Source: Klebsormidium nitens
Lineage: Eukaryota > Plantae > Klebsormidiophyceae
Assembly (NCBI GenBank): GCA_000708835.1
Contig: DF236964.1
Location: 310,001-374,000 of the forward strand
DNA length: 64,000 bases
Reading direction: 5' to 3'
A model generated the notes under the pieces. It did no database searches. It was given only the letters and a program-made list of their open reading frames with translations, and was not told where the DNA came from. Within the stretch, counting starts at the first letter, position 1. Each line of letters opens with the position of its first letter. Positions 19,601 through 50,350 of the stretch are shown in pieces. The translations under genes were made by a program, and so were the position numbers.

Positions 19601-22520
19601 TTGTCGTTATCTGTTGTTACAGCACTGTTTTTTGATGTTATCTTACGGTGCTGAGGAGGTCAACTTTGATCTCTAAATGCGAGTCGGATCTTTCGGAGCC
19701 CTTTCTAAGCGCCCCGACAGCGAAAGCCTCGTTTAAAACTGTATCTCACTGCGAGCCGTGGCAGCAGTGATCGCAAAACAGCCGCTGCCCAAAGCGGGGC
19801 GATCGCATCTCATCCAGGTCGAGACGCCACGTTGACAGCCCGTTTCTTCATCCGATTCAAACTGTGGGTCCTCCAATGAAAGCATGAGCGCTTATCTGCA
19901 GCGGCCTGGATAAGCCAAAGCTAATTATGGAAAACTGAACTTTTGAGACCAATTTCCGGACTGCCCGCCGGTTTGGTACTGTTTTGGTCTCACTCACAGC
20001 CGCTTTAGGCGGCCTTCTTTTGATTATACAGGACTTCCTTAATATGTTGGGTTTATCTCTGGTCTCAGTATGGGCTTTCGTATATAGTACGATGACTCCT
20101 GCTTGAGCTGCAGCCAGGGCAAGAAACGAATTGGTTGATTAGCAAGCGCTTCGACGTCAGCTTCCGATACGAGAACGAGTTCCTCTCAACCCATTGAATC
20201 CCAAGCGTTTATGATGGCCATGACGAACGACGGCCAGTCGAGGTGAGTCAACCTGACTGCTGCTATGAGCCACAACCCTTTGAAGATTTCATCCCCTTTG
20301 TTGGGCGTTAATTCGTCAACGGAACGAGCTATTGATTTAAGCTTGCGACACGATGATGGCCGGAGAGCGGCAGGCCCTGGCGACGTAACGGTTCTGTCAG
20401 CGTTAAGCGATAGTTCGCGTCCGCGAGGTTCTGGAAATGTCCCTTCGCATGACGTAGCGCAGCAATCTGAGAGCGCGTATGGAGAGATTTCCTTTCACTT
20501 ATCTGGGTTGACTTGCCGAATAGTGAATAACAAGGATGCCAATGACGAGGCCGAGCAATGCTTGCCACGTTCAAGCAGAAAGGTGCTTCTTGCTGCATGG
20601 AGGCCCACCGAATAAGCAAAACCTCCGCAGTATGAGACTTAGAGCAGTCCTCGGACATGCGAGACACGTCAGAATCGAAAGAAGCCTTGCTATTGGTGGA
20701 GTTTCAGAGAATACCTTCCCAGATTGTGGCTCTTGATTTGACGGTGACCCAAATGGACCTAATCGATCTTGTCACTACAATTCCGAAGTCTTCAAGGGGA
20801 GCCGGTCTCGTAGGAGTCTATTGCAAGTTTGAGAAGGTCACGCTAAAACACCTGGACACGCCAAATAGTGTTTGGTTGTCATGCGTAGTTTTGCGTCCTA
20901 AAGGCAGGACAAAAGCAGACCTTGAATCCAATAGGGGAACGGCAATGCTTAATAAGGCGGAGCACCTGATTGGTGGCCATTTCAGACCACTGCGGCATTC
21001 CTTTTGGCTCCACCGAGTCGATTCATGCAGTGACATCACCTTCAGAGCGATAAAGTAACCAGACATGTATGATGCCAGCAGACTACAGCCGTAAGATGAT
21101 GAAATTGGTACAGCAGTACGCAAAGCTTTGATACCCTTTGAGCCCGGCTTTCGAAAGTATGAGATTCATGGGGGTGCCAGTGGTTCACCGTTATTCATCA
21201 GAATTCTCTGACATAAGGCAGCTTTCTCTCAACCCTTGGGCAGGTCTCAAACGAAGAGTCAACCGTCGAAAATGACTACTAAGAGCGTGCAGCAGCGTGG
21301 GTTCCAAGCCAGTGGCTGGAACGTGCTTAAGCGCTGCAGATTTCTGTTTGATTGCGACGTCCTCTTGTGAGCATGCTTGGTGAGGCTGGTATACCATTTA
21401 AGCAGGGACTTTCAGAACGAACAAGATGGTGCGAAGAAGACTACCGCGAAGAGCCGTTAACGCCACAGCCCACTCTTTGATGTTCGATCACTTCCGCATG
21501 AGCAGCGACCTAGAACCGCATGCCTGACGTCAACCTTTAATGTTCATGACAATCTGCGCCGTCGTCGTGTACGCTTGTAAGCGTCTGCAATCTTCGGGCG
21601 AAGGACTACCGCAGCTGCACCACTACTAATAGACCAGGAGCCTGAGACATGAAGCAAATGCCCACAAAGCCGATCAAGATTGTTACTTCGCGTGCCACCT
21701 GCGTTACTTTGCAACTCTGGAGATATGTGGCTGTCGGGCACTGATTCAGAGTTTGGCCATCAATTTAAGGGCCAGATATGGCTTTCCTTTTGGAATGAGT
21801 CGCCGACGCTTCCTCTGCTCACAAGCGAAGAGGATTTTCCGTGTCATTGCTTTGCTGTCTTTAACTCTTGGCCAAAAGGCTTCTGAGAGTTCTTCTCACA
21901 AGTCCCTGGCCACTTTTCGGCAGTAGTAGCGTCAGCAATAATCAGAGCTCTGACCAATAATCAGAGCTGCCAGCACGCGTGTTGTAAGGAACCAAATAAC
22001 GGTTCACAACGTCTCGTTTGGTGCGAGATGAGGAGAAAAAGAGCGAGCGATCCCCGGCCCGGAATCGACCTACTGGTAACGACCACGAATCATGACCATT
22101 GCAAGCTGCTGACAGGGTCAGCTTTGATTAGCATACGAAGGTTTGGATCTTATGCCCACATGGCAGTGATGCACCAGGGGACTTGGTCCGATTGTCGGCC
22201 AATGAATGGTCCATTTGCCCTGCGAGCCAGCGGATCCTCGAACCGAGTCTATTCTACGAATTGAAGTCGCTTCCGTCCACGAAACTTGCCGACCCGTCCG
22301 TCAAAGACGCTCTGGTCTTTCACCACCCGAGTCCAGCGCTTGAAATCTAACTGCGCTGCTAAAATGTATATATTGGATATCCTACATGCATTGTTATTTG
22401 AAGGACCTGAACTGCAATCGGCAATGAGGGACGCGTGCGTGAGTAGGCCTGTCGGTCAAAGAGTCGGTGACGCAAGCGTGGACCGTTGCAGAGCCGAAGT
22501 GGCAATCGGGGGGCGTAGAA
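16690..22520 (+). pseudogene. Several decayed copies of the GND/LRR-like family (18410-19040 paralogous to 21560-22260; 17740-17940 to 19740-19925); boundaries approximate
   Basis: Colinear nucleotide similarity between the blocks. + frame LRR-like motifs FEDLRVSGADS (~18550) vs GDMWLSGTDS (~21720). GND-type boxes at 16708, 18993 and 22162 are followed by the shared ggacttggtcc and/or gccagcggatc motifs. Stops and frameshifts throughout. Confidence 0.6.
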
Positions 22521-25500
22521 CTACAAGCAGTAGCCGAGTGCCGAGATCTAGAAATCTGCTCGCCGCTTTCATAAGGCTTCCCGACCGATTGGCTGGAGAG
22601 TTCGAAAGGGCCGGTTTTTTGTGCAGCAGCTCTGTTTTGAAAGATTTGTCGAGCCCATCCTGAGCCCTTAAGACTTCTAGACCCACCAACTCTCTAAGAA
22701 TGAAGCAAGTCGCGAGAGAATTTCGTTTTCATTTTATAAATGCGTTGTTTTGGAATCCAACCGGTTTTTGTACTTCTAATTTGGGTTTGCGAGTCGGGTG
22801 GTGTGGTTACTTTCTCGAAGAAACGGCGCGGCAGTCTATGAGGATCGAAAGTTCATCAATGAGCGATACGTAGGCTCATTCCTTGTTTTCTCGGAGCTCT
22901 GAGGAATTTCAAAGTCACTGGGCGTCCGAGCGGACAGCTGGGTCGACAAACGAGTCCACTGCCAGTATTTCCAATAGTCTGGTAACTCTATTGTGCCCTA
23001 ACCGCAGTGTGCCTTAAGATAGGCGCCCGGGGGACGGATGGGCTTGGCTTGGTGGTCAGAATGGGTTGGGGTGCGGAGCGCGTAAGCTTCTGGGTTAGGG
23101 CTTTTAGTTTGGTTGCTCGGGGTTTACTAATCGTAGGGCTGACAGCTGTTAGAGCTCACAAGAGTTACCAGTATATTTCCAATTGGATTTTCAACTTGAA
23201 TGCATTGCAAAATCATAAAGAGCTTCTGAAACTTCCGGAACTCGCTGCCAAGGCCTCTATTTCTAGCGGGTTCCATCTTTTCAATTGCTTGTGGCCCAAG
23301 CCCTGTCTTTCTGAACAGTGTGCCGGCAAAGATCGGGCGGTGTATCTGGGCAACGTTCATTGTGAAGTTCCGGCCGCGTGAGCCAATCTGCCTCACATTC
23401 TAGTGCGGTTGATACTCTATTCGATGGTTTTGAGATGTCGTGTTATTCTAATATCCCCTTGTGTGAAAAACTGCCAAGAAAGTACGAGTAAGCTATTTAG
23501 TAACGAGAGCGCACTCAGTCTCGCGCCTGCGCCCGACGCTTTAGAACCTTACAAGGAGTGTTCTTTGCTTCGGATGTCGGATGCTTATTCTCGGTGTCTC
23601 CGGCCTGGTTTTGACGATCATTCATCCTTGACGAGCGAAGGTGCATTCCGCCAACCGGAAGGTTCCGCGGGGCAGGCACGTGCCTACAGTACGCCGGCGC
23701 GGCGATGCAGGGTAAGTGTCAGCAGTCGGCTCTACTTTTCGAAAGCCCAGAACAGGCTTTTCTCTGCGCGGCCGCTGCGCAGATCCTCTCCCAATCTTAC
23801 TAGAACAATCTGGCTAAAGCTGTAGTTCTCAACGTGGCAATCAAATCTGGGACGTACCACCTGTCCGCTTTTGCGTACTGCAAAAGCGTTATGCCGGGCT
23901 GCTTTGTACGCGGGTTATACGTGAATGCTTCCGTCCACCTGAAAAGGGTGCGGCGCGTACCTTAGGTGCTGGAAAAGACAAGCAATCTTACATGGCCGAT
24001 AGGCCAGATTTGCCGGTCAAGCACCTGCGCAATATCCACGAAGCTGATGTTTTACTAATATAGATTGCGAAGTCTTTCCAATTATCAGCCCGAAAAGCAA
24101 GGTGCACTTTTGAGGGGAAAAGTGCACCTTCAGAAGGCCCTCGAGCCAAAAGCCTTCTCCACGCACCTTGATCTCTTGCCTGTTTACTTGACAATGAGCC
24201 CAAACGTCGGATCCTACTGTCAGGCCCTGATACACAATTGGTCAACGTGCTGGCCAAGCTTGTAAAACATCATGAAAAGGTTTGTTCTTCTCCTCATCGG
24301 TTGAGCCCCGACCGTCTCCGCTTGAGTACAAGAGATCCTCGCTGCTCTCGTTCCGAAGAGCTGTTCAAAATCAGAACCCAGCAAGGTCAACTTCGGCGGA
24401 AAACGCCATATGACACCCGCATCATAAAGAAGACCGTTAACGCTTATCATCTACCAACGAGTGATGGTCGGACAATCACTCCGGTCTCACCCGCCCTCAG
24501 ACCCAGCTTGCAATCAAAGGCACTTCTAGAAAGAACACGTACGTACCGATTAGCAGAGATGTCAGAAGTCTTCACAAAGTCAGACTGGCCTGCTTCGATT
24601 CGGTCCCGAAATGGTCGACAATTCAAAACCTTGACTAAAAAGATTAGTTGGCTTTCGTACTGATCCCCAGGCCGGTTCATCGGTTCCGTTCTGCTCGCTT
24701 TTATTGCTATTATTCTTGAGAGCGGCGCTTCAGCGGAGCTTTCTTACGTGATGACAGGACGGCGGCCGTGAAAACATATGAGCTATGCCTGGGGCCCAAC
24801 AGCAGACTAGTTTCCCATGCATAAAGAGGGTCTTCCTGAGACGCCGCACTCATCACAACAGTCGAAAGCTTTCTTCCTCTAAGTACAACACTTTGTATAG
24901 GGCCGGCATCGAATCAGATGTGACTTCGGGCCTTCTCTTGGTAGAAGAGGACTTCTACCACCAATCAAACTTGGTTAAGACTGATTCAACCTGTGTATCG
25001 GGCCGGTGGCCCAAGAGTTCAAATTCTGGCAAGCTGCTAAATTGGTAGATTCACAACACGCACGATGCATCGATGTCCCCAGATTTCCTCTTGCCCTTCA
25101 TCTTTCTGTGGCTGCGCTTTACGCATTTTGGCCCGATTGAGGCGGTGAGGTCAAGAGGGCAGAATCATAGTAAAGAAGTAGTCGCTCACGTAACTTTGCG
25201 GGCGGGGGCATGAGCCGTAGTCCAAAGTGCTTGACTAAAAACTTGGGGCGTAACTCTAAAGAAGGATCCGCTTCAACTGCAGTGTTGGATGGTGACGCAG
25301 CGCGTGCAAGCCCACTCGGCAAACGGGTCGGACTTTCCGCGGATATTGTCGTTCCACGCAAAGACGAGAACGAGTGAGGGGAGGCCTCAAGCTCCGGGCC
25401 ATGACCGGATAGAAAAGCTCCGAAAACCTACTGGCAAAATATTGAAGAACTTCGACGTAAAGTCAAGTTCGCAGAAAGACACGATAAGCTTCCCTTTATT

Positions 25501-25879
25501 ATTTTGCCTCACCTGACTTAAGATGATTTTGAATCTAAAAACTCCCCGGTCATCCGGTAGGGCAGCAGGGACAGTAATTCTCCTTTTGCCGATTGGCCAC
25601 AGGTTCTTCCGTTCGTCTTTGAGCTAGCTTCGACTTAAGCTATTTATGTCTCTTCTGAAACGGACGTCTTCGGAAATCCAACTACCACTCATGTCATCTT
25701 AGACAGAAGGAAGGATTGCGGAAGAAGCACGTCCAAACAAGGTTGATGGAAAACGGAGCTGCCCAAAACACTGGTCAGACGTGTCCGTTCGAGCTCGTCC
25801 CCTTTGAAATCCTTTGAGTATGTTTTTGGGCAGGAAATGGGGATATGATGAGGCCGTGAGGCAGTGATCCGCTAATTCT

Positions 25880-28080
25880 GGCTGTGTTAGCCAGCAATCG
25901 CGATTTGTGAGCCGCCAAGTGCCTGCACCATGAGCGACGAAGTCCGACATTTGATGCTTTTTTGTCTTCGTCGCTTGGCCAGAAAGATTCTTCAAGGTTT
26001 CGTACCGGTGATCTGTCAGGTCCTTATTGGCAGCCAGGGCCGGGCGCAGGTGACTAAATGTCAAATTCAAGCTGCCAGGCAGGTGTGGTCAAACACCCAA
26101 GGAACCCGCAACTGTTTCGTTAGTTGTGAAAATTCAAGTCAAGAGAGCAGTTTGAGAGCTTCAATATACTTGTGGGCTGCCTTCCTGCGAAGTGCATTTG
26201 GAAGAACGTAGTCGGCATGATGATTTGCCAGGCCAAAGAATAAAACGTCGATCAATGTGCTGCCAGATGTGCAAGTCCGGCCCACCTGCACAGAAGTCGA
26301 ACCTGGTCCATGGTTTGATCAGAATGATTCCCAAACGTGTTTATCTGAGCCGGGGTATCCGCAGGAGATGTCTCTGCTGCGAATTGATCGCCTCCATCTG
26401 TATAGTTCAACTGCCGGAGAAGCTCCAGCGGACTTGAATCACTGGGCTGACGTCACAAACCAGAACACGTGCTTTGCGGGAAAAATTGTGCGTTAGCGCT
26501 AACGCCATCCATGCCTCGTCCACTGTTGACGTCTATAAAAACCGAGCCACATGAGTTCTTGTGCTTTCTTAGTGTTCGAAGAAGTCGAAGCCAAGTCGGC
26601 CATATGAGGGACGCGTTAGTGAGAAGGATTATTGCTCAAGAGGCTGGGCGTAGTGACGTACCTAAGGCAGACCCGAGACTCAAATGAAATGATGCACTGG
26701 GGCATACAACATTTTGGTAGCCAACTTGTCACATACTTGTGTCAAACTTGAATGTTGCGGACAGCGAAGGATTAAAACGAGTTTCGACATGCGGACTGTG
26801 CGAGGTGGGGATTTCATCGTACGCAAATCTTCTGTGGGTCTTGGCAGCAGTACGCACCACGAAGCTAGGACGTCCGATTCTGATTCAAGCTTCTGACGAC
26901 TGTGCATCTGCGTAACCAATTCTGCGTAAGGATCATGAACGAAAAGCGGAATGTCATTCGGACTCACAGCCTTTGAAAAGGCTCTCATTTACGCCGTTTT
27001 TAACGGCTTTCAGAACATGTAGTCCGAGAATCGGCTGTGCCCTTGGCTTGAAGACGCGGGGTAGCGGCACCATATGTATATAACGCACCTTCGTTCATTT
27101 GGGCAGGGAAACACGGTCCGGTGGCCAGACAAAGGCAACTTAATACTCGATGGACCTCTGAGCCACGTCTCAAGTGATCGAATATTCCTTCCATGCAATC
27201 CTCACCCGTCGTGTCTTTCAAGGACGGTCGACTGCCGCAACTAAAGAAGACCTCGAAAAACGCCGGGGTCGGTCGGTCGGTCAGTCGGTCGACTTTTTTG
27301 CGAAGTCGGTCGAGCTCGTCTCCTGCAATTTTTAGCTGCTTTAATCCTGCAGACTTGGAGCTTCAAGAGGCGACAGTTGGGCACCATGTTTGTTGGATCT
27401 AACTTTCCAACCCATCGCGGGCCAGCGTTCGACGCTCTGTCATAAGCCGAGCCCCTCAAGAGCTCCACCAAAGCAACGCAATCCGTTCACCCGTTAACTT
27501 CTGGTGTCGTTGTTTGATCACACAACGACATGACTAGCTGTTGAGCTTTCCTAATTAGATCCATCACATTCCTTTTGGCGCGACCGCCAGCGCCTGACGT
27601 GTGCAACTCGTCACGAATAATTCGCCACGCCGGCATATGTATGGGAAGTCTTCAAGGAGATCACGCTTTCTCTTTCACTGCAGAGTGTTTTACAATGAAA
27701 CAGAGAGCAGGCTTGATCTGGCCGCCTGGCGATGATGCATCGCAGAACCTGGTCCGGTTTCGGGCCAGGAGGGCTGCGGATCAAGAGCCAGCGATTGATT
27801 CAAAAAATACGTCTGCAGTGCGAACATCTGCGGCCTGGACACAATCGGAAGTACTTAGGGCTCGTCCGCTTGAGAAGCTCTGACGTTCAAGAAGGTGACG
27901 GCGAGAGCCAGCACGAACTCAAAGGTGCTTGCGCCAGTCACGCCTTCCGGCGCCAATAAAAGTTTGCGCCGTTCGTACATACTTGATTATCCTATGCTGT
28001 ATCTACTGATCGAATAACGACCCAAGGCCTACGCACATGGATATGAGGGACGCTTGGGTGAGCAGAACTTTCCCTCAATC
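25880..28080 (+). pseudogene. Further decayed GND/LRR-like family copies
   Basis: A box at 27728 (ggcgatgatgcatcgcagaacctggtcc) is followed by the family blocks gagccagcac..ggtgcttgcgcc (~27905) and atgagggacgc..gtgag (~28050, also ~26600). 25880-26200 resembles 18600-18760. Confidence 0.55.
27267..27312. repeat. (GGTC)n micro-repeat, reverse complement of the GACC repeats in the TIR element at 35.8 kb
   Basis: ggtcggtcggtcggtcagtcggtcg at 27267-27291 plus gtcggtcg at ~27305. Confidence 0.7.
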
Positions 28081-28949
28081 GTCATCCGATACTTGTTTTA
28101 GGAAATACTTTTACTGCTCAACATTCTGTACCTTCTTCCGCCGTTTCCCGTTCCGTTCACACTTTATCCAACCGCAAGGACGTATGAAACCCAAAAAAAA
28201 AGATTCTGCAAATCAAAGCAGATATGGGCTCAGAATGCATTCTCAGCAAGTCCAGTCCCCAATGGCACAGCCTGTCTCAAGGGAACGGCTTCAAACGATT
28301 TCCCAAAGCGCCCAAAAATCACTGCGACGTCTAGTGGGTTGGAAGCATGTTGCATGCGGCCAGCGGGTGGCGTGCGACATGGTAGTGATGCAAGTGTGTA
28401 ACATTTAGCCCAAGGACGTTTTCATTAGAGGTCTACTTCTGTCGAAGAAGCTCTCATGGAAGCATATGGCAAGGACATGCAAGGCCACATGTGTAGTGCC
28501 AAGGAGATAATCTCCCAGGCCAGTAACGTTCCGAATGGGCTTAGCTCGCGCTCCTGAGCCCCTGACACCGACTTCAGAGAGCAAACGGGTCCCTATCCTC
28601 TTTACAGCCTTTTGGAGAAATAGTTTGTTCTTACGATCGATCGAAGATCTTTTTCGCGAACTTTAATTGGCCCATCGTGACCTCGATTCTCGTCAATCAA
28701 AGGGGTGCGCCTGGGAGGCAGCTGTGCATCTGTGACTACAAATTAGCTCTTGCACCTGAAATGGAACTTGTTGTTTGAAGGTCTCCAGGAATAATGGAAT
28801 ACAAATCTGTATTGAACTGACGGCGAGTGAACGGTGGACGCGCGAGCCGAAGTTGCAGATTTATTGTACTGTACTTGTTTTCCTATAGACAATATGCAAC
28901 CGTGCGATCAAGGCATACCTTGTTCAACTGCTTTCTTGTTTTTATTTTG

Positions 28950-29650
28950 AAGTGATCTAAAACTTTCGCTTCTGCATGCGTGTGTTCCTCATGATGAACC
29001 CGTGTCCGGGTCAATCTTGCCGAACCTCGGCGCTGCTTAGACGGTCCGGCACGTGGGGGCCCGGAATACCTGCGCTACCTTGCTATTTAAACGTCGATCG
29101 AGGCTGCTATGAAGGCTATGTTACTTTCTTGGGTCGTTCCCTCTCAGTGCTGGAAGGTACACTGGTTCGTGGCAGAAACAACCAATTCTACTGTGGCCAG
29201 CCGGCGCCCATACTGGGCTCGTGAATGATGGGATCAGGCAAGAAACGGCTCCAAACAAATACAGCCTTTCTGGAATCTTGTACAATCATTCCGCAGTGAA
29301 ACCATCAAAAGGAACTTTATTGCGTGAACAAAGCCTCGAAATCGGGCAATGACGTACTGCGGCCCTCGGTCAGGTCGCTGGCCAATGATTAGTTTATGCG
29401 GGAAGGCTTGCTTCGCACACCAATGAGCCGCTGGCCAAGGTTTGCGCTCGCTTTCTCCCGACAGAGAGTTCTTCGTTTGCTCTTGATCCAAAACTTACAA
29501 ACATTCCCATCCTTAGAACTTCACGCGTGACAAAGAGGCTCTCGATTGACCTTGACCAAAAGCTTTCGACAAACGCTCCCATCCTTCTAAAGTCAGAAAG
29601 CGTTCCGATCGAGTGACGGGCGGCTTTCCAGAATGATGGCCGTCCGAAAG
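28950..29650 (-). pseudogene. Decayed coding relic paralogous to 46330-47050; product unknown
   Basis: A 21-bp identity (actgtggccagccggcgccca) occurs at 29190-29210 and 46588-46608, with flanking colinear similarity. The minus frame gives QYGRRLATVELVV vs QCGRRLATVQLIV, with synonymous and conservative changes. Confidence 0.55.
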
Positions 29651-31169
29651 CGCAGGGCTGCCAAGGTTTGTCGGCTAAGAAATTTTTGTATTTCTGTACG
29701 TCGCTCTGCATGCCTCCGCGTTGCGCTTACTCTGGATCTGCAGGCAAAAACTCCAGATTCAAGATATCCTGATGCCTGGCAGCGTAGATTGATACCGTCC
29801 ACGAAATCTGATGAAATATGAGCAAGCTTTGCCTAAAACAGGCAAGTTGTGGCCCTTTCTTGATCTGGCAGTATGACCAGAAATGAAGCTGCCAGGTCCA
29901 GCTTGTGGGCACTATGAGAAACAGCGAGGCGGCGATGACGTCGATCCATGAGATCTGAGCCCGTCGCCATGCAGGACTTCTCGCTCTTTGTTTATCTTCC
30001 TCATGTTATTCTTACCTTTCTTTTCTTTGGAAACCACTTAATCCGAAGCCAATGCAAAGACAAGGCGAGGAGATTGAGCAACAGCTCGCAGCTCAGACAC
30101 TGCCATACCATCTGGCCGAGATCGAGGAGGCTGACTGGAAAGAAAACCAAACCCGTAGAAATTCAGCCTGACGTCAGCTTGCAGGTCTGGTAATCCATCA
30201 CAAAGCGTTTTATGCCTTTATAAAATGCGACTCATACAATCGAGACAGATGCAAACTTGGAAAGAATAGACGATGCTTCTGATTTCTCACATGATTGTAT
30301 AGTCGCAAGTCGCACGCTGAGTCAAGTTTGGGCTCATTGAGTGATTCAAAGTCTGGACTCCGGTCCAGTTTGATGCGGAACCCGATCTATATAAAATGAG
30401 GTCCGCTTATATAATTTTGCATACTCCACCCGCTAGGGTTCATTACGATTATGCGCGAGCGGTATGATGCCTGAAAGCTGAGGGGGGTAGCGATGCAGAG
30501 AGCGGATAAACGGGATCTGTTTGGGGATCGAGCGCACCAATTTTTAAATACTGCCGTAGCGCCGCATTCGTTCCATTTCGAGCCGCTCAATGAAATCACC
30601 GGCACCAAACCTTGATACTGCCCTTCACAATGAAACACGCATGGTTTTTCTGGTCCCGTTCAAAATAATTCTGCCGAACACCGCAAGTCTGCAAAATTAT
30701 TGCAATGTTTGCCGCTTTAACATTGGCATCGCGTTACATCCCTTAAAACCGTCGATCAGATGGGCAAGGACAGGGAGTCCTGTGGCGAATTAAGAGGCCT
30801 TGGATGAATCCAGATTGCATTTAGAGCCCTGAAGTTGTTCGTCTTCGTCTTCTTTGGAACCTTCTATCATCTATCTTTCAGCCACTGTCTGAGAATGAGG
30901 CCGGAAGACTGCCTCAGACGAGCATTTTCAGATGATTGGTTTGCAAGGACCCTTTCGTTTATGATTTTTGGATTCTTCCTTCTGCAGTCCCTTTGCGTTG
31001 TTTTTATGGCAAGGTGCGATCTTCGAGGACGTTAAACACGCATTCTGTGACATTCCCAATCAAGAGTGAGCCCTCAAACCGCCTCCGCCACGAGCAAGTA
31101 AGTTCGTTCCTGTAAACAAAATGTCTTCATATCAGTCTAGAGCTTCGTTAAAACTCTTATTCGTTCTTT

Positions 31170-34100
31170 TGCGCGCCAGCACCCACGTGGGTACCTCGTT
31201 CGGGAGGATTGCCTCGCTGGCGCAGTAAGCTGAGAAACAAAGATATTACTGCTTCTATGCATCGCTAACCGCATAAGAAGTGAACGCGAGACCGGTGCGG
31301 CCCGCGTGGCAATGATGCACGGCCACAGCACCTGGTCCAATCTGCGGCCATGTCACGTGCCTGGCGGTTCCCTCAAACGAGCCAGCGGATCTGCAATAGA
31401 AGCTTGTGCCATGAGTATTGGATTGGCCTCACTTAAAACCAGACGTTTTCCCCCATGCATCCGCAAGCTGTAAACACCACAAAGGTGACGTCAAAAGCTA
31501 GCGCATGGGTGCTTCCGCCGCAAGACTTGCCCGTTGCATGCTTGACGCCATCCACGCCTCAGCCTCTAACCGACGTAAAGGCTGCGCGGTCAGATCCTCC
31601 AGCTTCAAGTTTTGTGCTTTCCTTCATGTTGAAATAATTGGATTGCAGCCAGCAATGATGGACGCGGGCCTGACGTGAGCAGAGCTGTCGGTCGCTCACT
31701 TTATGATGACTTGGCCTGTTGCGGAGCCAGAACTACATGTGAAGTCAATGGGGCATTGTTTGACCGGGTAGCCTAGTCCTACTCTCGCGATTGATTGATG
31801 GTACGATCCCGGTTCGTTCTTCCAAAAATGTCCAACCGACTGGATGGAGAAGTTGGACTTTCCGCTTTTCAGCAGCCCAGAAGAGAATCGGTGATAGAAC
31901 GATGAGCACATTCGGAGGCGATAAAATGGGAGCTCTTCCGACATCGAAACGCCGTCCTGCTAGACTGAAAACCGGGATCTTGAGATTGAGAATGAGGAAA
32001 AGTCAGCCTTCGCCCCGCCCGGCAATGATGCATCGCAGGAGCTGGTAAAAATACCTGCCGGCCAGCGATGTCTCTTTAGCGTCCTGGATTGCCAGAAGAT
32101 CTGCAGAAGACGTTCCTGAAGGGACCAAAAGACGGTTTTTATTTGCCAGCAGAGAAGCTCTAACGAACATCACAAGGCTGAAGTCCTCAAGAGCTAGCAT
32201 ACGGGTGCTTCCGCCGCCCCGCAAAACAACGTGTCGCTCTACGCTTTCCTCGCCTCGTCGGGCCTCGACACGCTGCGCCGTCATTTGCTCTGACTTCTAT
32301 ATCTCAACTGATGGTTCGAAGGGTTGAAAGATGCAATCAGTGATGAAAGGCGCGGGCTTGAGCAGGTCTTGCCGCTCACAGCTTGATTGACGTCCTGTTG
32401 CGGAACCAGAACTGTATCACTTGGGCGTTGTACGATTGGATGGTCGAGCACGGGCCGCGCTCACGATTTATTGGACTCTCGCTACTCGTTTCTCCGAAAC
32501 ATTTGGACCGGTTGAATGGAGAAGTTGAAAGGTTAATTTGTTGCCTGTCCAGCGGCTCGGAGAACCAGTAATGGATTGTTGAGCACGTCCGAAGTCTACA
32601 TGAATGTCTCAGTATGCCGGCGCGCCATCGCGCTAATTTAAAACCCGCAATGTGAGTAAATAGAAGAAGGAATCCAGCCTTCGGCCCGCTCGGCAATGAT
32701 ACTATGATGCACCGAGTAAGTTGGTCCAGACTTCCGGCCAGCGACATTATGACGTCCTGAATTTCCAGTGGATACGCTGATCAAGAGTTTCGTGAACGTT
32801 ACGGACCTACAGACAGTATGCCTTGACCAGTACGAAAGCTCTAGCAAACGTTACGAAGCTGACGTGCTCACGAGCTAGCACATGCGTGCCTGCGCCGCGG
32901 GCAAGGTCGTCGCTTCGCTGCATGCCTCCGACGAAACTCGATAGGCTGCGCCGTTAGACGCCCCGAGTTGAGTCTTCAGCTTTTTTTTCTTTCTGAGGGA
33001 TTGGAATTGGACCCGGCAATGATGGACGCGGCCGTGAGCAGGGCAGTTGCTCACTTCTAGACGACTTTGCCTCTTGCGGAGCCGGGTTCACATTCAAACT
33101 TACTGGGGCGTTGTACGACCGGGTAGCCTAGTCAGGGCCCGCGCTCTCGCTTCGTTGGAATCGCCCCTCGGTTTTTCCAAAAAATTTCCGACGGACTGGA
33201 TGAAGAAGTTTCAGCAGCCCAGAGGACCAGGGACGGATTGATGAGCACGTTCGCAGCAATTAACAGGAGCTCTTAATGGCTTCATCAAGACGCTGACGTG
33301 CTAGACTTGGGAACCGGAATTTGGGGAGCAGAAGAAGAAGCCAGCCTTTGGCCCGCCCGGCAAGGGAGCACCGCAGGACCTGATCCAAACAAGTTCCCGC
33401 CAGGAACTCTTGGCGTCCTGAATTGCCAGCGGATGTGCAAAAGGCGTTTACGAATCGGACCACCAGACAGTATGCCTCGGCAAAAGCTCGCGAACGCCAC
33501 GAAGCTGACGTCGATCGATCACGAGCTAGCTCACGGGTGCTTGCACCGCCGGGCAAGAAGTCGCGTCGCTTCACGCTTCCACGCTTCTGACGGACCTTAA
33601 CATAGGCTGCGCGGCGAGATGCTCCGACTTAAATCTTCAGCTTCTTTCCTTTTTGAAGGAAACGGACTGCAACCGGCAATCAAGGACGCCGACGCTGGCT
33701 TAAGCAGGTTTTCCCGCTCACAGCTCGATACAGACGGGGCCTATTACGGAGCACCCACGCAGCACCCACGTGGCACCTCGTTTCGGACTGAAAGTGCCTC
33801 GCTGGCCATAGTACCTGAGAAACCAGAGAAGTCGCTCCCTTCGTGCACTGCGAACTGGGTAGTAGAATCGCAAGTTTGCTTTCCCCGTGGCAATGATGCA
33901 CCGAAGGACTTGCAATTATTGGTCCGCATGATTGTGGCCATCTGTCCTTTGCTGTTCCTTCAATGAGCCAGCAGCTAGAGATCTGCCATGCGTGAAAGGC
34001 CTCGGGCGAAATCAGAAAGTTTTTGTCATTCTCAAGGGGGCCTCTTCCGCATTGTAAGAGACTGACGTCAAGAGCTAGCATTAAAGAGCATGTGCCGGTT

Positions 34101-35310
34101 TGACGACGTGGCGTTCCTCGACGCCATCCACCCTCCCCACCCTCAACAGGGTGCGCTGTTAGATGCCCCGTCTTCTTGTTGTTTGAAGGACCGGGATAAC
34201 TTTGGGAATAAGGGACGCGGGTGTGATCATGGCTGTCGTCACTCACTCATGAAGACGTGGGCATTTGCGGAGCAGAGCTACACTCGAAGTAACGGGAGTA
34301 TTCATGTACGATTTCCCAACGCGAGTGCACCGCTCATGAATTTGTCGAACTCAGCTTCACACGTTCATCCAAGATTTTACGGCCCAAACCATGGGGAAGC
34401 TGAGAGACTCTGTCGATTGCCAGCACCTTGCAAAATTAGTCATGGATCCTTGAGCACATTGAAAGACCTATAAGACCTCTTCATAAACACGCAGGTGTGA
34501 TCAAATGGAAGAATTTAAAGAGCAAGAAAAGAAGCCAGCCTTCGGCCCGCCCGGCAATGATGCACCGCAGGACCTGGTCCCGACAAGTTCCGGCCAGCCA
34601 TATTGCTAACGTCCTGAATCGCCAGCGGATTCACAAAAGGCGTTTGTGAAACGGACCACCAGACAGTTGACCTCGCAGAGAAGCTCTGGCGAACGCCACG
34701 AAGCTGACGTCACGAGCGAGCATATAGGTGCTTGCGCTGCCGGGCAAGACGTCGCGTCGATCCGAGCTCTCCGAGCTCTCCACGTATCGACTGACCTCGA
34801 CAGGCTGCGCCGTCAGTTGCTCTCACTTTCATATCTAGCTTCGATTGATGTTCAAATTAAAGGGTTGAAAGATGCTAATGAAGGACGCGGGCTTCCGCTC
34901 ACAGCTTGGTCACGACAAGGCATGACGTTGCCGGAACCAGAACTGCATTTCCTGGGCGTTGTAGGATCGGATGGTCGAGCACGTGCCGCGCTCAAGAACT
35001 GTTAGCTTCGCCACCTCCTCCGAAACCCTCCGACCAATTGAATAGAACAATTGACGGTTGATTGTTGCTTGCCAACCAGCTCGACGCTATAATCAGTGAG
35101 CACTGGAATTTTGAGCACGTTCAAAGGTCCATGATAAGTCTCCATATGCCATTCGCCAATTAGATCGAAGATCGGAGCTTAAGTAGCTGACAAAAGACGA
35201 AACAATCTATATTCGGCCCGCTCGGCAATGATGCACTGCAGGACTTGGTCCTTGTTGCGGCCACTTGTCATAGTGGAATCCAACCGAGCCAGCGGGTCTG
35301 AAGGGGACAG
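31170..35310 (+). repeat. Diverged tandem array of six ~670-bp units (plus the start of a seventh) derived from LRR-like coding sequence
   Basis: The anchor motif ttcggcccgcccggcaatgatgcaccgcaggacctggtcc has its ggc at 31308, 32021, 32692, 33359, 33889, 34553 and 35224 (spacings 713, 671, 667, 530, 664, 671). The same ordered internal blocks recur unit after unit; the short fourth unit has lost part of them. Confidence 0.88.
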
Positions 35311-35820
35311 TGCGGCAGGGGTCGGTGTTGCGACGTGTCCGACATGTTTATCTCAACACATACATGTCGACGGGTGCCAAGCTGGCGCTCTGCAATTCTA
35401 CGACTTCTTTCGTCCACAATTGCATGACAAATCAAACATTGATTGTACAGTCAAAAGCTTCCCACAGCTCCTGTCACGAACTTCAAGCGCGTTCAATCAC
35501 GAGTGGTGGGCAGTTGCACGAGGGTGCTGCCCGTTTGTGGTAGGGAGCGCCAAGTCCGCGAACATTCCCCAGTTTCCCCTCCAAAATCGCCTTTCCAGGA
35601 ATGGAGTGAGAGCACCAAGTCCCAAATCGAAGCGTCTCGGTAGCGCCTTGCAGCGGTTCTGCGCTCAAAACATCGACTGAATGAAGGCCCGATGTGACCT
35701 CCGTCCATTTGACAGTCTGACGCATGTGCCAAAGATTGAAATCTGGAGATTCATACGGAGCTGACTCCAATGGCGAGCGCAATGGTGCTTGCGCCGTCAA
35801 GGCGTTTGCGTTTACCGCCA

Positions 35821-36617
35821 CGCTAATCTTGACCACAGGGAAGATTTTCAGTTTTCCGTTTCACACGGCGTTCCGCTCCGCATGCTCTCCTAGGTACATG
35901 ATTGTTTTCGATTCCCAGACCGACCGACCGCGGGACCAGTTATCACTGCCGCCCCACCCCGGCCGGACCAGGCGGACCAACCGACCGCCGGACTACATCC
36001 TGGCATCCCAATGATCCCACCCTGGCCTGACCGGCCAGACCGACCGACCGCCGGACTGGGCTAGGAGGCGCAACCTTAGCCGGACCAGGCGGACCGACCG
36101 ACTGCGGGACCGCAAGGCTCGGTCGGCCGCCCGTCGGTCGGTCCGGCAAGTTTTCTCAATCTGACATACCAGTGTTGGTACGTACAACTCGGGGTGGCTC
36201 ACTGAGCGCCGGACCAGGCGGACCGACCGACCGCTGGACCGCTAACTTTAAGACTCACCGCAAACCACAGGGTTCATGGTCTCTAACCCTAAGTCGTCCC
36301 GTCAGGACCTACCCAAACCCACCCTAACCCCCAAGCTTTGCCCACCACAGTCACTAGAAGATGACAACAAACTAAAAGCTAAGGATAAGTGACACACCCT
36401 AACCCTAAGTCGTCCCGCCAGAGCTCACCCGCACCCACCATAACCGCCCTGCTAACCCCATCAAAGTCACAGTCCGGTGGTCGGTCAGTCTGCCGATTGT
36501 TAATCATGCAAAGTAAATGCCAAAATAATTCAGAATTCAGTCGGAGTTCCGTTGTTCCGTTGCCGACAGGGGCACGCGGAGCCCGACTTAAAATCTCCCC
36601 TGTGGTCAAGATTAGCG
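35821..36617. mobile_element. Non-autonomous TIR element (MITE-like, 797 bp)
   Basis: 28-bp terminal inverted repeats match at 27/28 (cgctaatcttgaccacagggaagatttt at 35821-35848; aaaatctcccctgtggtcaagattagcg at 36590-36617). Internal ccggaccaggcggaccraccgac occurs at 35963, 36080 and 36209. A 19-bp direct repeat ctaaccctaagtcgtcccg occurs at 36283 and 36399. No transposase ORF; the TSD is not clear. Confidence 0.75.
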
Positions 36618-37399
36618 GGCCCCTATTTGCGTTCTCCCACGCCTTCAAAAAGCCCAGCGTGGCAAAGTGCGCAAGTAGATGCTCTCGTCTAGCTTATTCT
36701 TGGATACGTCTCTTTAAAGGAGCCAGTTTGCTAACGTCGGCAAGGAGCGACCCGGGCGTGAGCATCTCAATTGCTCACTTTCGATCCACACGTGACACCG
36801 TACGGAGCGAGCACCGCAATCTTCAAAGGTACTCTGCGGTACTAATCAAGGTCGAGTAGCCGAGTGCCGCGCTTAAGAACGGTTGGATTCGCCGTTCGAA
36901 AAGCTGAACGATTTTGACGTGCTTTTGTCTGAGCGCTCGTTGTATTAGTTGAAAAGCAGGTTCGAAATGGCATAAGATTCTGATCGCGGTCCACCTGCAG
37001 CGAGTTAAGCTGATTTGTACACGCTGACGCACATATATACGTCAGAGATGCGCGCCGCTATCGCCAAGCCGCGCTTTTATTGAGCGGATCCTTTGAGTTC
37101 CTCCTATCGCTTCTTCCACCTTGACTTAGCTTCCTTGAATTGCCGCCCTTTCTTTTCAAACATGTGGTACTCACGGTTTTTGCACCGCTTCCTCCGGCAC
37201 CGCCAAGTGCGTAAGATCAACAGGAGTCAGCCTTTGCACAACTCGCCCATCGTCCACCCTAAAACCCTGTTTACTTCAAGTGTTTGTGTTTACTTCTGAT
37301 TGGCTCAGCTGTTGTGCATGATTGTTGTTGTGCATGAAAGAAAGTCTAACGGCCCGGCAGGCTATGAGGGAAGTTTCATCTGGGCAGCGAGCAATAGCT

Positions 37400-38505
37400 C
37401 ATCTTGTCATGAAGAGCAATCCAAGCTGTGACTTATTCCAGGCACTGGTCTTGCGGGCGGACTTTGTGAATCAGCGCACGCCTCAGATTGGAAGGGCTGC
37501 AAGCTTTGGAATCTGCACAATCTTCAGACAACGTTAGAGATCTTGGGCGCGTTGGTTTCAAACAGGAGCCAAAACGGGGCTGAATCGTAGCATTCCGCTA
37601 CAAAAAAGTGGCCATGAATCGGAGCTAAGCCCCGGCTCAAGTTTGGTGTGAATTCAAGGCGCCCTGTATACGGAGTCCAGTGCTCCAAGGCCTCGTTTCC
37701 TTACCGAGTGTTTCTGGCCCAAGTCCTAGCTTCTGTCAGAGTGCGGCAAGGATTAAGCGGTTCATGCATGAACGTTGCCCACTCACTATGAACGAAGGCC
37801 TTGTTCAAGTCGCTGTTCAAGCGGGTATTCTTACCTCAAAAAAGGACGTTCAAGTTTGTTCAAGCACGTCGAGTTTGTTCGAGCAGAGATAGCTTTTTGA
37901 ACCGGTACAAGCGCCTGGCACACGCCCGTACTAGGACAAATTCGGCTATAAGAATCGAATATCCGGTCATTTCAGCCATATAACGACTTGAACATTGATA
38001 TTTTCAAGCAGGATAAGAACTCGAACACGCGTTACTTGGACAGGGCCCTGGTTTACAGTGACTGTGCCGTCTCCAACCCATGCGTTGCGAGCGAGAGCCG
38101 GTCCGCACACATGATAAAGATTGCGAATACGTGCGCGTGATCCAAAGGTTCAAGCTTTCGAGCACATTTCCCCTCAATCTGACCGGCGCTTCCTAGTGTA
38201 GCGGTGATCGATCGCTTCGTTCTGGGTTGCTGCAACGGCGTCGGTCGTGTCGATCAGGTTTCCTGCGTAAAGGTACTCCACTGTCTCGCGTTTATTAGTC
38301 CCTCCGCGCTTGATGTTACGGCGACTGGTAAGGAAAGCCAAATGCACTGTCGCCATGCTAGTCAGCTCGCACATTGGCAACATGAATGTGCTATATATTC
38401 AAGCCAGATTATTTCCCTGGTCAAAAAGCTCCCTGCGATAGCACTCACTCATATTCGCACTCATCCATCCCGTTCTGAAGGCGCTACTACTCGTCAAACT
38501 CAGCT
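37400..38505 (-). pseudogene. BTB/POZ(-BACK)-like relic
   Basis: Minus-strand fragments in BTB order: LSLTSSSAFRTGWMSANMSE (from 38503), TVEYLYAGNL (~38261-38284) and KCARKLEPLDHAHVFAIF..ADRLSL (~38100-38170). A weak BACK-like AWIALHD lies at 37406-37426. The fragments are in different frames with stops. Confidence 0.4.
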
Positions 38506-38939
38506 ATCTAAGTAGCCTTGGAAGAGCTCCACACCCTGGAGTGAACAGCCTTGCCGCTTCGGCTGAGATTTGTCCTGAGCACTTTGTGTGACCGTCGGGC
38601 ACTGATTTGAGAGGATCTGGCCACCACGCCGGCTAAGTGTTTTGCCGTCGTTACCAAAACAAATGAGCCCCCGTGCGGATAGATTCGTGGGACGTTTAAA
38701 TTGATCGTCGAGTTCCTTCGTTTCCTCTCGGCCGACAGACTCCCAAACCTTCTTTTCCGAAAATCGCTAGACGATGATGGGCCAGCTCCTTGGGTGATTG
38801 CTTTTCAGGAGCGTAGCCTTCAGCAGAGTCATGTTCCCGGTTTTTCCGTCAGAAGGGCCTCCCTTCGCTTCGTGCGATGCGGCCAGTCTGCAACAGAGTG
38901 AGAGTACAACATGATGAATCTGTTCCGGCGCGAATAGAA

Positions 38940-39640
38940 AGAATACGAGAGGTTTTGCCTTGGTCCGCAAAGGAGCTCCGGCGAACTTCGCGAAGCTGAC
39001 TCGGACATCATACGCTAGCACACGTCGATCGGATGCTTGTGCGGCCGGGCAAGAAGTACTGGCATTCGCTCCACGCCTTTCCGCCTCCAACGACCCTCGA
39101 CAGGTTGCACCGATAGATGCTCCCAAACAATTCTTTCCCTTTGTTCCCTTTTGAAGGCTTGCAGAATGCAATCGGCAGTGAGGGACCCGTACGTGAGCAG
39201 AGCGGTCGCTCACTGGTGGAAGACGTGGCCTATGACGGAGCCAGAGCTGCAGTTGTGTTTGTGACTGAAACGTGTTTTGTGATACGACGAGTAGCCAAGT
39301 GCCGCGCTCGCTAAATTTGCCACTCGTTGCTCCGACCCTTTCCGACCGAATGATAATGGAGAAGCTAAAGTAGTGGTTGACCAGCAGCTCGAAGGATCAG
39401 TGATGAGCAACTTCGAAAAACGGAAGGTCTCGTCTTCGGCACGCAATCGTGCTTTATTTGAAGACCGTCCGATTCTAAAATGAAGTAAAAGGAACCCTTC
39501 CTTCGACCCGCCCGGCAATGCTCCACCGTAGGATCTGGTCCTTCAAATGTTGCGCCATCGGTGTTCGCTGGGCTCTGTAGTTCCACATGAGCCAGCGGGG
39601 CCACATGCGGAATTCGTGCCGCGTTCGGTACGACCAGACG
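38940..39640 (+). pseudogene. Dispersed copy of the ~670-bp GND/LRR-like unit
   Basis: The same ordered blocks as in the 31-35 kb array: cgaagctgac..gctagcacacg (~38990), ctcgacaggttgcaccg (~39095), gtgagcagagcggtcgctcac (~39192), ggagccagagctgca (~39237) and the anchor box at 39514. Confidence 0.75.
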
Positions 39641-41605
39641 CTCTCTCCACTTGCTTCGAAATCGATTAGTATCACTTGATCTCGTTGACCAAACCCAGGT
39701 TCTCACGTTAGCAACGCGTTGTGTTTCGACCGTTTCGAGCTCAACAAATTCAAGGTTCATTTCAGAAGTCCTGAAGTCTTCAGCCATAAAGGGCTGTCCC
39801 AGAGCTGACAGAAGGACAATGAGGCTTCGATCGGACGTCTTCTGCAGAAATAATGCATCAGCCCGTCAACGAACTTTTCGCAAAGTGACGGGTCAGATTG
39901 ATACCTTGTAGAGGATTCGATAGCACGCCGGGCTATATATTGTACCCTTGGTATTTATGGTGTTAGTGGGCGCTAACTTACGCTCTTTGAATCAGACAAC
40001 GAAGTCCTGGCGCTAGTGTGGCTTTCCTATGGCCATTTTTCTCATGCTTTTTCAGGCTGACGTCGCGGATGAGCCCTGTGGCAAAGGACTCAACTTGTTT
40101 CGTCTGCAGCTCGGTTCTAGGGCCGTCTAGAAAAAGCAGAAGATGTATGTGCGCTTCTGATTTGGCCGCGCTCTGCCGGTTCAAAGGACGTTGTCTCTTT
40201 CGTGTCGATAGATAAAAAAGACAACTTTATCCAGTCTGCAAAGGTTGCGCGTTTGGCAGTGCACGGTTTCGAGCGGGCTTTGTGCACTGTGCGCGGTTTC
40301 AGACGACGGGCGCGTACAAAGCGGCAGCCGCCTGCCGACCAACTGCGAAGTTCGAACCACGCGCGCAAATTATTCGAGCGACGAGGACCATTCGTGTCCG
40401 TGCGATGAAAAGGTCAAAACGTACGGCTTATCGTGCGGCCAGGAAACGACGATTCCCGTTTGCCTCTCGTTGACTCTCGTGTCGAGTTTCGTGTCGACAC
40501 TTCCGTGACGTTGGTCGACTTTCGGTGTCAGAGGAATCTGTTTGTTTGGGATCCGGGATTCCGGTCCGCTTTCATCGAGCGTGCAATGTCCGCAGACCAG
40601 GAAGCCGCCACGTGGCCGCCACAGCCAAGGACAGTCACAGTCTGGCCCTTGAGTCCGTCCGGGGTCAAAAGTCACAGTATCCCCCTTAAGAATCTAGACC
40701 TGCTAGACCAAATTACAAGGTGACCCTGTGTTCTAGTAAGTCCTTATATAAAAATGCTATATTGCTGTGATTCAAGTGATTCCTGCATGTTGCCATGATG
40801 CCTGCACTTCTCATATATATCACCTCATGCGCTATGCACCTGGGTGTGCACGCGTTCATTAATACGAAGTGACCATCACTAATCAGCAACATCTCGGCCT
40901 TGGAACTTTAGATACACAGCTGAGCAACCAATGAGCAACGAATCGCTTTTTCAACTTCTACCTGGTTTGGCTGCATTCAGCTGCCGGTGGGGGAGTCTTT
41001 AGTAGCTGGTGAGCGAGCCTTATGTGTCCGTTTCGGTAGGCCATTGTACTGTAGAAATATTTCATTGCATAATAGGTGCCACCACCCGCTGTGCACTGTA
41101 ATCTTCAGGGTGTAAGAAATTGCAGCTTGCCTGAATGGGGCCTGCATCATGCCTGGTTAAGCAGGGCAGGAAACTCTAGCTAGCGTGATCTGCTGCGGGG
41201 ATTAGACAGACGATCGAATCTGATCAGTGCCGACCATATGATGAAAACCTTCAGCTAGCATTGCAGTGCAAGCAGAGTAGCAAGCCTGTGGCTGAGAACA
41301 TTTTTGCAAGCCAGTCAAGAGTCTTGCCGTTTCCTGACCGCTCAAGAAACTGTATGTTGTCTTGCCCTTGCAGTGCCCCAGTAGCTGCTGTAATCTTCCA
41401 GTACCATGATTCAACATCTTAAACCCTGTTACCCCTATTTGAACTGAAGGGTCCCCACAGGCCGATCTGAGCTGCAGGTCTGTGATGTGCCGTGCCTTAA
41501 TCTACTCCATAGAAAGGCATATTACAGATATTGGCTCGGGAATGGTTGCTTTCATTCAAATGTAAGTCCTATTCCAAATTTGCTTGTATTTGCAGATCAG
41601 TTGCG

Positions 41606-49699: not shown

Positions 49700-50350
49700 A
49701 GACGAGGCCACCGCAGTGAGCAACACCGTCACCTGTGCAGCTCATGTATCCTACTCTTATTTAGAGCAGAAATTTTGTGACTTCCCCGGCTTACTTTGGC
49801 CACCAGCGCTCCATGTGGGCATTCGTTACATAAACTGCCACGTCGTCGCTTGCAGCTTAGTGGCCGTTTCAAAGAACTTCCTAGATCTATTTTTTGAGAG
49901 AATCAAGATCCAAACATAGCAAGATTTCGGCCCGCCTGGCAATGATTGCACCGCAGAATCCTGGGGCGGACTCGAGCGCCCGGGAGACTATGGTTTGCAT
50001 GCGGGTCCAAAAGAGCCAGAAGACCGGCAAAAGACGTCGGTGTAACGGGCCAAACATGAAGTCCGTCCACCAGACAGGCTGGCTCGAGATCTGCCAGAGA
50101 CGCTCTGGCGAATCCAAGAAATTGACTTCACGAGCTAGCACACGGGTGCTTGCGTCGGCAAAAGTTTGACTCAATCGATCGGTCCAGGTCCGCCATCCAT
50201 GCCTCCGATGGCCCTCCAGATCTGGGCCGCTCGGTACCTTTAGAGACTTTTCCTTCGTCTACTTAACGACGTTTTTCATTATATAAAATGTGAATTGCAG
50301 TTGACAAGGAGGGAGACGCGTGCGTGAGAAGGGCTGTGCTCGACCATATG
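49700..50350 (+). pseudogene. Dispersed copy of the GND/LRR-like unit
   Basis: Anchor ttcggcccgcctggcaatgat (ggc at 49938), KLTSRASTRVL block at ~50120-50152, and a gacgcgtgcgtgagaagggctg block at ~50316. Confidence 0.7.

Follow-up and report, generated by a model that had tools for sequence, protein, structure and literature searches.

A mosaic, non-coding tandem array with putative box C/D-like kink-turn modules in Klebsormidium nitens

What kind of element is a head-to-tail array of diverged ~670-bp units that resembles, when translated, a set of shuffled protein modules? The question is raised by a 64,000-nucleotide stretch of the alga Klebsormidium nitens (GenBank assembly GCA_000708835.1, contig DF236964.1, positions 310,001 to 374,000; hereafter the window, to which all coordinates refer), in which an earlier note had read such an array as the remains of leucine-rich repeat (LRR) coding modules. 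The array is non-coding DNA, and its apparent conserved 'codons' are conserved non-coding blocks. Its history is that of a simple 670-bp array in which a ~2.5-kb block was subsequently duplicated, plus at least two exchange or conversion events. As to its nature, we favour on balance, and with modest confidence, an array of recombining, non-coding tandem units that carry orphan kink-turn modules of box C/D-like form, mostly variant or decaying, set in a one-strand field of at least 40 kb.

Layout, recombination and coding potential of the array

A repeat finder placed seven copies of a 40-nt anchor at 31296, 32009, 32680, 33347, 33877, 34541 and 35212, with anchor-to-anchor distances of 713, 671, 667, 530, 664 and 671 bp, so that the seven anchors described earlier are borne out. 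Pairwise identity among units 1-6 is 50-67%. Tandem Repeats Finder left the array undetected, because its period exceeds the 500-bp limit of that program and because the copies are too diverged. The extent first given to the family was too narrow: a profile built from the six units and run over the window recovered, outside the array, the three dispersed copies listed in Table 1 and partial copies at 26356-26630, 27719-28074, 35741-35799 and 36668-36893, all of them on the + strand. Additionally, GC-rich short repeats occupy 35915-36470, between fragments of unit 7, with CCGGACCAGGCGGACCGACCGACCG present four times alongside a 72-nt pair containing TAACCCTAAG; they may represent an insertion that broke the array.

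The units are mosaics. Compared in sliding windows, unit 6 has unit 4 as its closest counterpart across the initial ~300 columns (0.82) and unit 2 beyond them (0.75-0.78), and unit 3 resembles units 4 and 6 on its left side and unit 1 on its right; a max-chi-square recombination test gave p=0.0005 for the mosaicism of unit 3 and likewise for that of unit 6. The sequence preceding unit 1 (flank X) recurs at an offset of 2583, the match between units 2 and 6 has an offset of 2532, and at this same offset units 3 and 7 agree in every one of their first 21 bases. From these offsets and shared starts it follows that a ~2.5-kb block running from flank X through units 1 and 2 to the start of unit 3 was duplicated as flank X, units 5 and 6 and the start of unit 7, and this higher-order duplication accounts for the reappearance of the unit 1 flank at the end of unit 4. 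Thus, much of what the earlier note had observed stands, namely the array itself, the grouping of its anchors into 1/5/7 and 2/3/4/6, the mosaic units and the echo of the unit 1 flank at the end of unit 4 (79% identity), and its reading of a footprint of unequal crossing-over or gene conversion is supported by the nested duplication and the exchange or conversion events. Across the whole window, direct duplications outnumber inverted ones by 38 to 1.

The coding half of the earlier interpretation fared differently. It had held that substitutions between units were largely synonymous or conservative, that the units were therefore protein-coding modules and that these modules were LRR-like. The alleged substitution bias was not confirmed: three-base periodicity is absent from the mismatches between units (statistic 233 against a null of 254±17 from within-block permutations, p=0.89), the gap runs that separate the most similar pairs of units have a length divisible by three in only 14 of 65 cases, and unit 6 has a stop codon (TAG at 34962-34964) in the A-L-[YF]-D motif, giving A-L-stop-D. 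Every full unit contains 4-14 stop codons per frame in all six frames, which, together with the missing periodicity and the out-of-frame indels, contradicts the notion of coding modules, and one conserved block falls in differing reading frames from unit to unit. LRR-like identity is not supported by the homology searches either. Among array open reading frames (ORFs) of at least 60 aa on both strands, Pfam returned neither an LRR nor any other family at E<=10. The most gene-like of these ORFs, 104 aa on the - strand of unit 4 and carrying the translated anchor DQVLRCSLAGRAKGW, found no credible relative in a HMMER search of 1.84 billion representative proteins, its sole borderline match (E=4e-4) being the translation of an unrelated 65-residue tandem repeat. 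When ten array ORFs were looked up exactly in a collection of 15 billion proteins, none was present as a called protein. Frames of the + strand were covered by the Pfam search and by the internal tests, and it is these internal tests, rather than the absence of relatives, that carry the non-coding verdict.

The window's only LRR coding sequence found is an F-box-associated ORF of 327 aa at 63018-63998 on the - strand (PF24758, E=2.4e-6), which lies 28 kb from the array and is absent from both the unit-profile and the self-comparison matches.

Candidate kink-turn modules and the surrounding field

The anchor, GGCAATGATGCA, contains AUGAUGC, which is like the box C (RUGAUGA) of box C/D small nucleolar RNAs (snoRNAs). 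In many copies the bases before this motif are complementary to an arm located 65-120 nt downstream, and this arm is directly preceded by GA, resulting in the order 5' arm, AAU, GA ... GA, 3' arm. That order is the sequence geometry of a kink-turn, as found in box C/D snoRNAs and in the 5' stem-loop of the U4 small nuclear RNA (snRNA). A module would thus comprise a 5' arm, an AAU bulge and GA (jointly AAUGAUGC, the box C), 65-80 variable bases, a second GA and the complementary 3' arm. Judging from the sequence and from what is known of kink-turns, its geometry is predicted to be that of the kink-turn which is bound by Snu13/15.5K and which closes box C/D snoRNAs as well as the 5' stem-loop of U4.

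Closure of the modules exceeds matched controls. For each of 30 sites matching G[GC]C[AT]ATGA, the best GA-anchored downstream duplex was compared with that formed by the same arm when placed at random in the window, in 150 regions. The level p<=0.05 was reached by six sites (1.5 expected) and p<=0.1 by 11, with a Fisher combined p of ~1e-5. When the GA requirement was dropped, GA still abutted the 3' arm in 10 of 27 strong closures, the estimate by chance being ~3-4. By sequence, a stem, a 3-nt bulge ending in U, tandem GA and a 3' GA abutting the stem occur together in modules u1A, u7A and u3B (named by unit and by position A or B within it) and in about nine further modules in the window. 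A terminal stem of at least 4 bp closing 60-300 nt is formed by the same three array modules, with 7-10 paired positions, and weakly by u2A and u5A; it appears in the minimum free energy fold, with z from -1.9 to -2.5, for u7A, u3B and two modules elsewhere. In the unit alignment, the B stem is paired at 56.5% against 22-38% in slid controls and covaries at 0.238 against 0.151 (none of 500 shuffles was as high), with five pairs changed on both sides, the structure used for the pair count having been taken from u3B, which favours this result. The A stem is paired at 69% against 22-37% when slid. Counts of G-U versus A-C mismatches, which bear on the transcribed strand, contain too few data to tell.

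Within a unit, module A lies at the beginning and module B follows ~330 nt further on. The A modules of units 1, 5 and 7 (type I) end in nnGA-GCCAGCGG, in place of which those of units 2, 3, 4 and 6 (type II) carry CCUGA-AUU-GCCAGCGG, a division that coincides with the grouping of the anchors; among the type II modules the spacer to the arm is AUU or AUC, and in u2A the box D position reads CUGG. Box C takes the form AUGAUGC in the A modules of units 1, 2, 5, 6 and 7 and AUGAUGG in the B modules of units 1 and 3, and it is lost in u4A and in most B copies. Module B is excellent in unit 3 and degenerate in the other array units. No further recurrent kink-turn modules were found at homologous positions within the unit, and homology between the unit halves is not demonstrable beyond the 13-nt box C motif. 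A strict scan of the window for box C/D RNAs (RUGAUGN ... CUGA plus a stem) returned six sites on the + strand and five on the -, none of them in the array, which such a scan misses because box D is non-canonical here.

Conservation among the units is clustered, with 32 twelve-column windows at or above 0.8 where 2 are expected. Three of the top eight conserved blocks are the box C of A, the box C side of B and the GA plus 3' arm of B. Unit positions ~150-290 (e.g., 34690-34830) hold further blocks conserved as well as the kink-turn parts: GAAGCTGACGT / TCAnGAGCTAGC, which is a split form of the palindrome TGACGTCA, then GGGTGCTTGCGCC and ACAGGCTGCGCCGT. The last of these resembles a 3' splice site, lying 3' of a pyrimidine-rich tract and CTRAC in six of the seven units. 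An acceptor-like signal (pyrimidine-rich tract, branch-point-like CTRAC, ACAG/G) sits at unit position ~262 in 6/7 units; no consistent splice donor matching it was found. The upstream sequence element of plant snRNA genes and telo-box motifs occur at chance level, and the seven matches to the anchor that came from a metagenome scan are due to chance, none having similarity to the units.

Box C-like motifs are strongly polarised over a large part of the window. When up to one mismatch is allowed, GGCAATGATG has 23 occurrences (4.8 expected), of which 22 lie on the + strand. Exact copies of the 8-mer GGCAATGA number 19 on the + strand and none on the -, and with one mismatch the counts are 77 on the + strand versus 23 on the - (shuffles, 22.7±5.6), the excess being confined to 0-40 kb. 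At nine exact GGCAATGA sites outside the unit family the flanks are unrelated; since the motif is kept amid unrelated flanks, tandem copying alone is an insufficient explanation. The array is one part of a single-strand field of putative modules that extends over 40 kb or more of the window, and the youngest amplification of this field of GGCAAUGA sites.

Several other features of the field are worth recording. Between 376 and 17000 on the + strand, GGCAAUGA sites belong to several unrelated families and often lie 3' of a T-rich run. Well-closed modules outside the array are seen at 11619-11700 (7-bp stem, fold z=-2.5) and 13393-13472 (z=-2.2), and the arm test gives weaker closures at 376, 2431, 7019, 13792 and 14129. 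The window's most canonical-looking box C/D candidate is a 69-nt segment at 16712-16780 on the + strand (UUGGCA-AUGAUGA ... CCCUGA-UGCCA, with a 5-bp terminal stem), for which Rfam gave no match. Older direct duplications, at 70-82% identity, pair 2301-2999 with 4961-5628 and 17859-19044 with 19857-22214. Within the former pair, the module at 2431 retains its stem and AAU bulge, both of which are gone from the copy near 5094 (GCCGC-AAC-GA ... GA-GCCAU), and the block just 3' of the 2431 module is more conserved between the duplicates than the module interior. Among the dispersed unit copies, module B of the one at 22153 (module start 22420) is well closed, reading AUCGGC-AAU-GA ... GCA-GA-GCCGA. 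No ORF of at least 130 aa in window positions 1-40000 matched Pfam; by this crude ORF-and-Pfam test, the 40 kb that lie upstream of the CBM14-DPBB gene yielded no gene. The linker of that gene contains internal tandem repeats of ~27-80 bp at 42411-42618 (+).

Table 1. Array, candidate modules, related copies and field in the window (energies are those of the arm duplex, with empirical p)
Feature	Position	Strand	Description
Mosaic tandem array (flank X, units 1-6, start of unit 7)	31177..35310	+	Seven anchors; unit profile E 1e-120 to 1e-176; mosaicism
Flank X, copy 1, before unit 1	31177..31238	+	Copy 2 at 33760-33823, replacing the end of unit 4
u1A, type I, 90 nt	31299..31388	+	CCGCGUGGC-AAU-GA-UGCA ... 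AAAC-GA-GCCAGCGG; -13.6 kcal/mol, p=0.026
u2A, type II	32012..32098	+	Box C intact; 3' side CCUGG-AUU-GCC; outer arm broken
u3A, type II	32683..32771	+	Box C interrupted by an 8-nt duplication; 3' side CCUGA-AUU-UCC
u3B, best module, 83 nt	33008..33090	+	UGGACCCGGC-AAU-GA-UGGA ... UGCG-GA-GCCGGGUUCA; 10-bp closing stem; inner hairpin GUGAGCA/UGCUCAC; -18.9 kcal/mol, p=0.013; fold z=-2.5
u4A, type II	33350..33432	+	Box C lost (AAGGGAGCA); arms intact
u5A, type I, weak	33880..33974	+	Pairing left in GGC/GCC only
u6A, type II	34544..34628	+	Box C intact; canonical CUGA followed by AUC-GCC
u7A, type I, strong, 81 nt	35215..35295	+	GGCCCGCUCGGC-AAU-GA ... AACC-GA-GCCAGCGGGUC; -20.6 kcal/mol, p=0.007; fold z=-1.9
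Older dispersed unit copy	22153..22674	+	Modules A (22162) and B (22420); unit profile and module inspection
Older unit copy	38941..39644	+	Unit positions 119-670, then the start of the next unit; unit profile
Older partial unit copy	49926..50337	+	Past the CBM14-DPBB gene; unit profile
Strand-polarised field of GGCAAUGA (box C-like) sites	376..40000	+	5-9 sites per 4 kb in most bins

Alternative readings of the array

On the account that we favour, a ~670-bp segment holding two putative kink-turn (box C/D-like) RNA modules, A and B, was copied head to tail; the ~2.5-kb array block was then duplicated, and copies were patched by unequal crossing-over or gene conversion. The + strand would be transcribed as a long precursor, from which modules with an intact kink-turn would be bound and trimmed to stable RNAs of ~80-95 nt, with the precursor probably processed as in plant polycistronic snoRNA clusters and in the mammalian SNORD115/116 arrays. 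The variant or decaying state of most array copies would reflect a birth-and-death pattern, and the module RNAs would be orphans.

A number of observations weigh against this account. The full geometry is present in only ~3 of 13 array modules, the remainder being variant or decayed. The type I modules retain the GA of box D and not CUGA, and in the type II modules CUGA is separated from the arm by AUU, so that neither type has a CUGA directly abutting the terminal stem; the type II modules moreover depart from kink-turn geometry, because the three extra bases can pair with the AAU bulge. Neither a canonical box D nor a D'/C' pair was seen, except in u1B, which was read by eye. Rfam 15 gave nothing at the gathering score and no snoRNA family at E<=5-10, and RNAalifold, run in sliding windows over the seven units on both strands, returned no significant consensus fold. 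The A stem shows no covariation, because both of its arms are simply conserved. Also unexplained by the modules are five well-conserved blocks, around GCTGACGTCA, GAGCTAGC, GTGCTTGCGCC, ACAGGCTGCGCC and TTGAGCACGT. Lastly, one-strand polarity is an automatic outcome of tandem duplication.

Several of these points feed the main rival, which we regard as rather unlikely: that the array is a functionless relic, the decaying product of local head-to-tail copying, whose blocks reflect recent gene conversion and not selection and of which nothing is used today. The degeneracy of most modules, the lack of a consensus fold, the pervasiveness of direct duplications in the window and a polarity that follows from tandem copying are all what such a relic would show. 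It accounts poorly, however, for the exact retention of GGCAATGA at nine sites with unrelated flanks, for closure on GA and a complementary arm above matched controls, and for conservation that is strongly clustered although the units are only 50-67% identical. The blocks left over by the modules lend themselves to a different alternative, in which the units act at the DNA level as arrays of protein-binding sites in double-stranded DNA, for instance in the role of an enhancer or boundary. The bZIP-type palindrome TGACGTCA, a GCAAT half-site and the palindrome GGACCTGGTCC are candidates for such sites, and both TGACGT and GAGCTAGC are among the best-conserved blocks and are unexplained by RNA modules. 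Binding sites in DNA give no reason for a GA-preceded complementary arm 65-120 nt downstream, however, and in units 2, 3 and 4 insertions interrupt the TGACGTCA palindrome; we consider a DNA-level element quite improbable.

A last possibility is that the units are dead coding modules, each formerly specifying an LRR-like repeat of ~220 residues, in a decayed bank of recombining receptor cassettes. Short stop-free peptides do recur, such as DQVLRCIIAGRAEGW on the - strand and KLTSRAS on the + strand, but the indels and mismatches of the units carry no trace of a reading frame, stops abound, frames differ between units at one block, and neither a Pfam family nor a credible protein relative was found; we consider this scarcely credible. 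As the array lacks LRR coding, the speculative analogy with recombining LRR cassette loci, such as those of lamprey VLR or brown-algal ROCO exons, falls as well. A VLR-like bank of LRR cassettes in an alga was a tempting but wrong reading, and it is now removed.

Comparison with known systems and significance

The 5' stem-loop of U4 snRNA and the kink-turn of box C/D RNAs are the site bound by Snu13/15.5K/L7Ae, and in U4 the site reads GCC-AAU-GA-GG. The K. nitens modules share with it the stem, the 3-nt AAU bulge, the GA and then a GA plus complementary stem; beyond the motif there is no similarity, and the two strands of the modules lie 65-120 nt apart, as in snoRNAs, instead of forming a short hairpin. 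At the level of the array, satellite DNA with higher-order repeats offers another likeness, in that both combine units in tandem with a higher-order period, of 2.5 kb in K. nitens, and with exchange among those units; the K. nitens array differs in having only about seven, very diverged copies in which short blocks are selectively retained.

Closer parallels come from arrays of snoRNA genes. The SNORD115/116 arrays likewise consist of head-to-tail non-coding units, each with a C/D-type module, have no known rRNA target and evolve by birth-and-death and conversion (PMC12429941; PMC8789076), the latter having been described for the SNORD116 arrays (PMC8789076). Their modules, in contrast, are canonical, with a CUGA box D and guide regions, lie in introns of a spliced non-coding host and are expressed, whereas the putative modules of K. 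nitens have a box D that is reduced to GA or displaced; unit length also differs, at 0.67 kb in K. nitens and about 2-3 kb in SNORD115/116. In plants, snoRNAs are mostly found in polycistronic clusters, orphans included (PMC2875012). These clusters also belong to the Streptophyta and place several modules close together on one strand, with orphans and pseudogene-like members inside (PMC2875012). They differ in comprising a few different canonical snoRNAs with short spacers, whose members match Rfam families, as opposed to dozens of related modules over 40 kb in K. nitens. A literature search found no paper on such arrays in Klebsormidium.

Taken further, and more tentatively than the account of the array itself, it is possible that K. 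nitens keeps one-strand fields, tens of kb in length, of kink-turn-capped small RNAs that are not methylation guides, having a GA-only box D, no D'/C' and no known target, and that these form a lineage-specific class of structured RNA amplified in tandem. If so, the 670-bp array would illustrate how such a field grows, by unit duplication, block duplication and exchange, and how modules may be switched off, e.g., through the type II change, where the kink-turn bulge pairs with three bases that have been inserted. Expression of the modules, if it occurs, would mean that K. nitens possesses orphan snoRNA-like RNAs by the hundreds, in arrays that compare with SNORD115/116. This large one-strand array of putative box C/D-like modules, in the genome of an early-diverging streptophyte, is notable mainly in being young enough for its history of duplication and exchange to be read directly.

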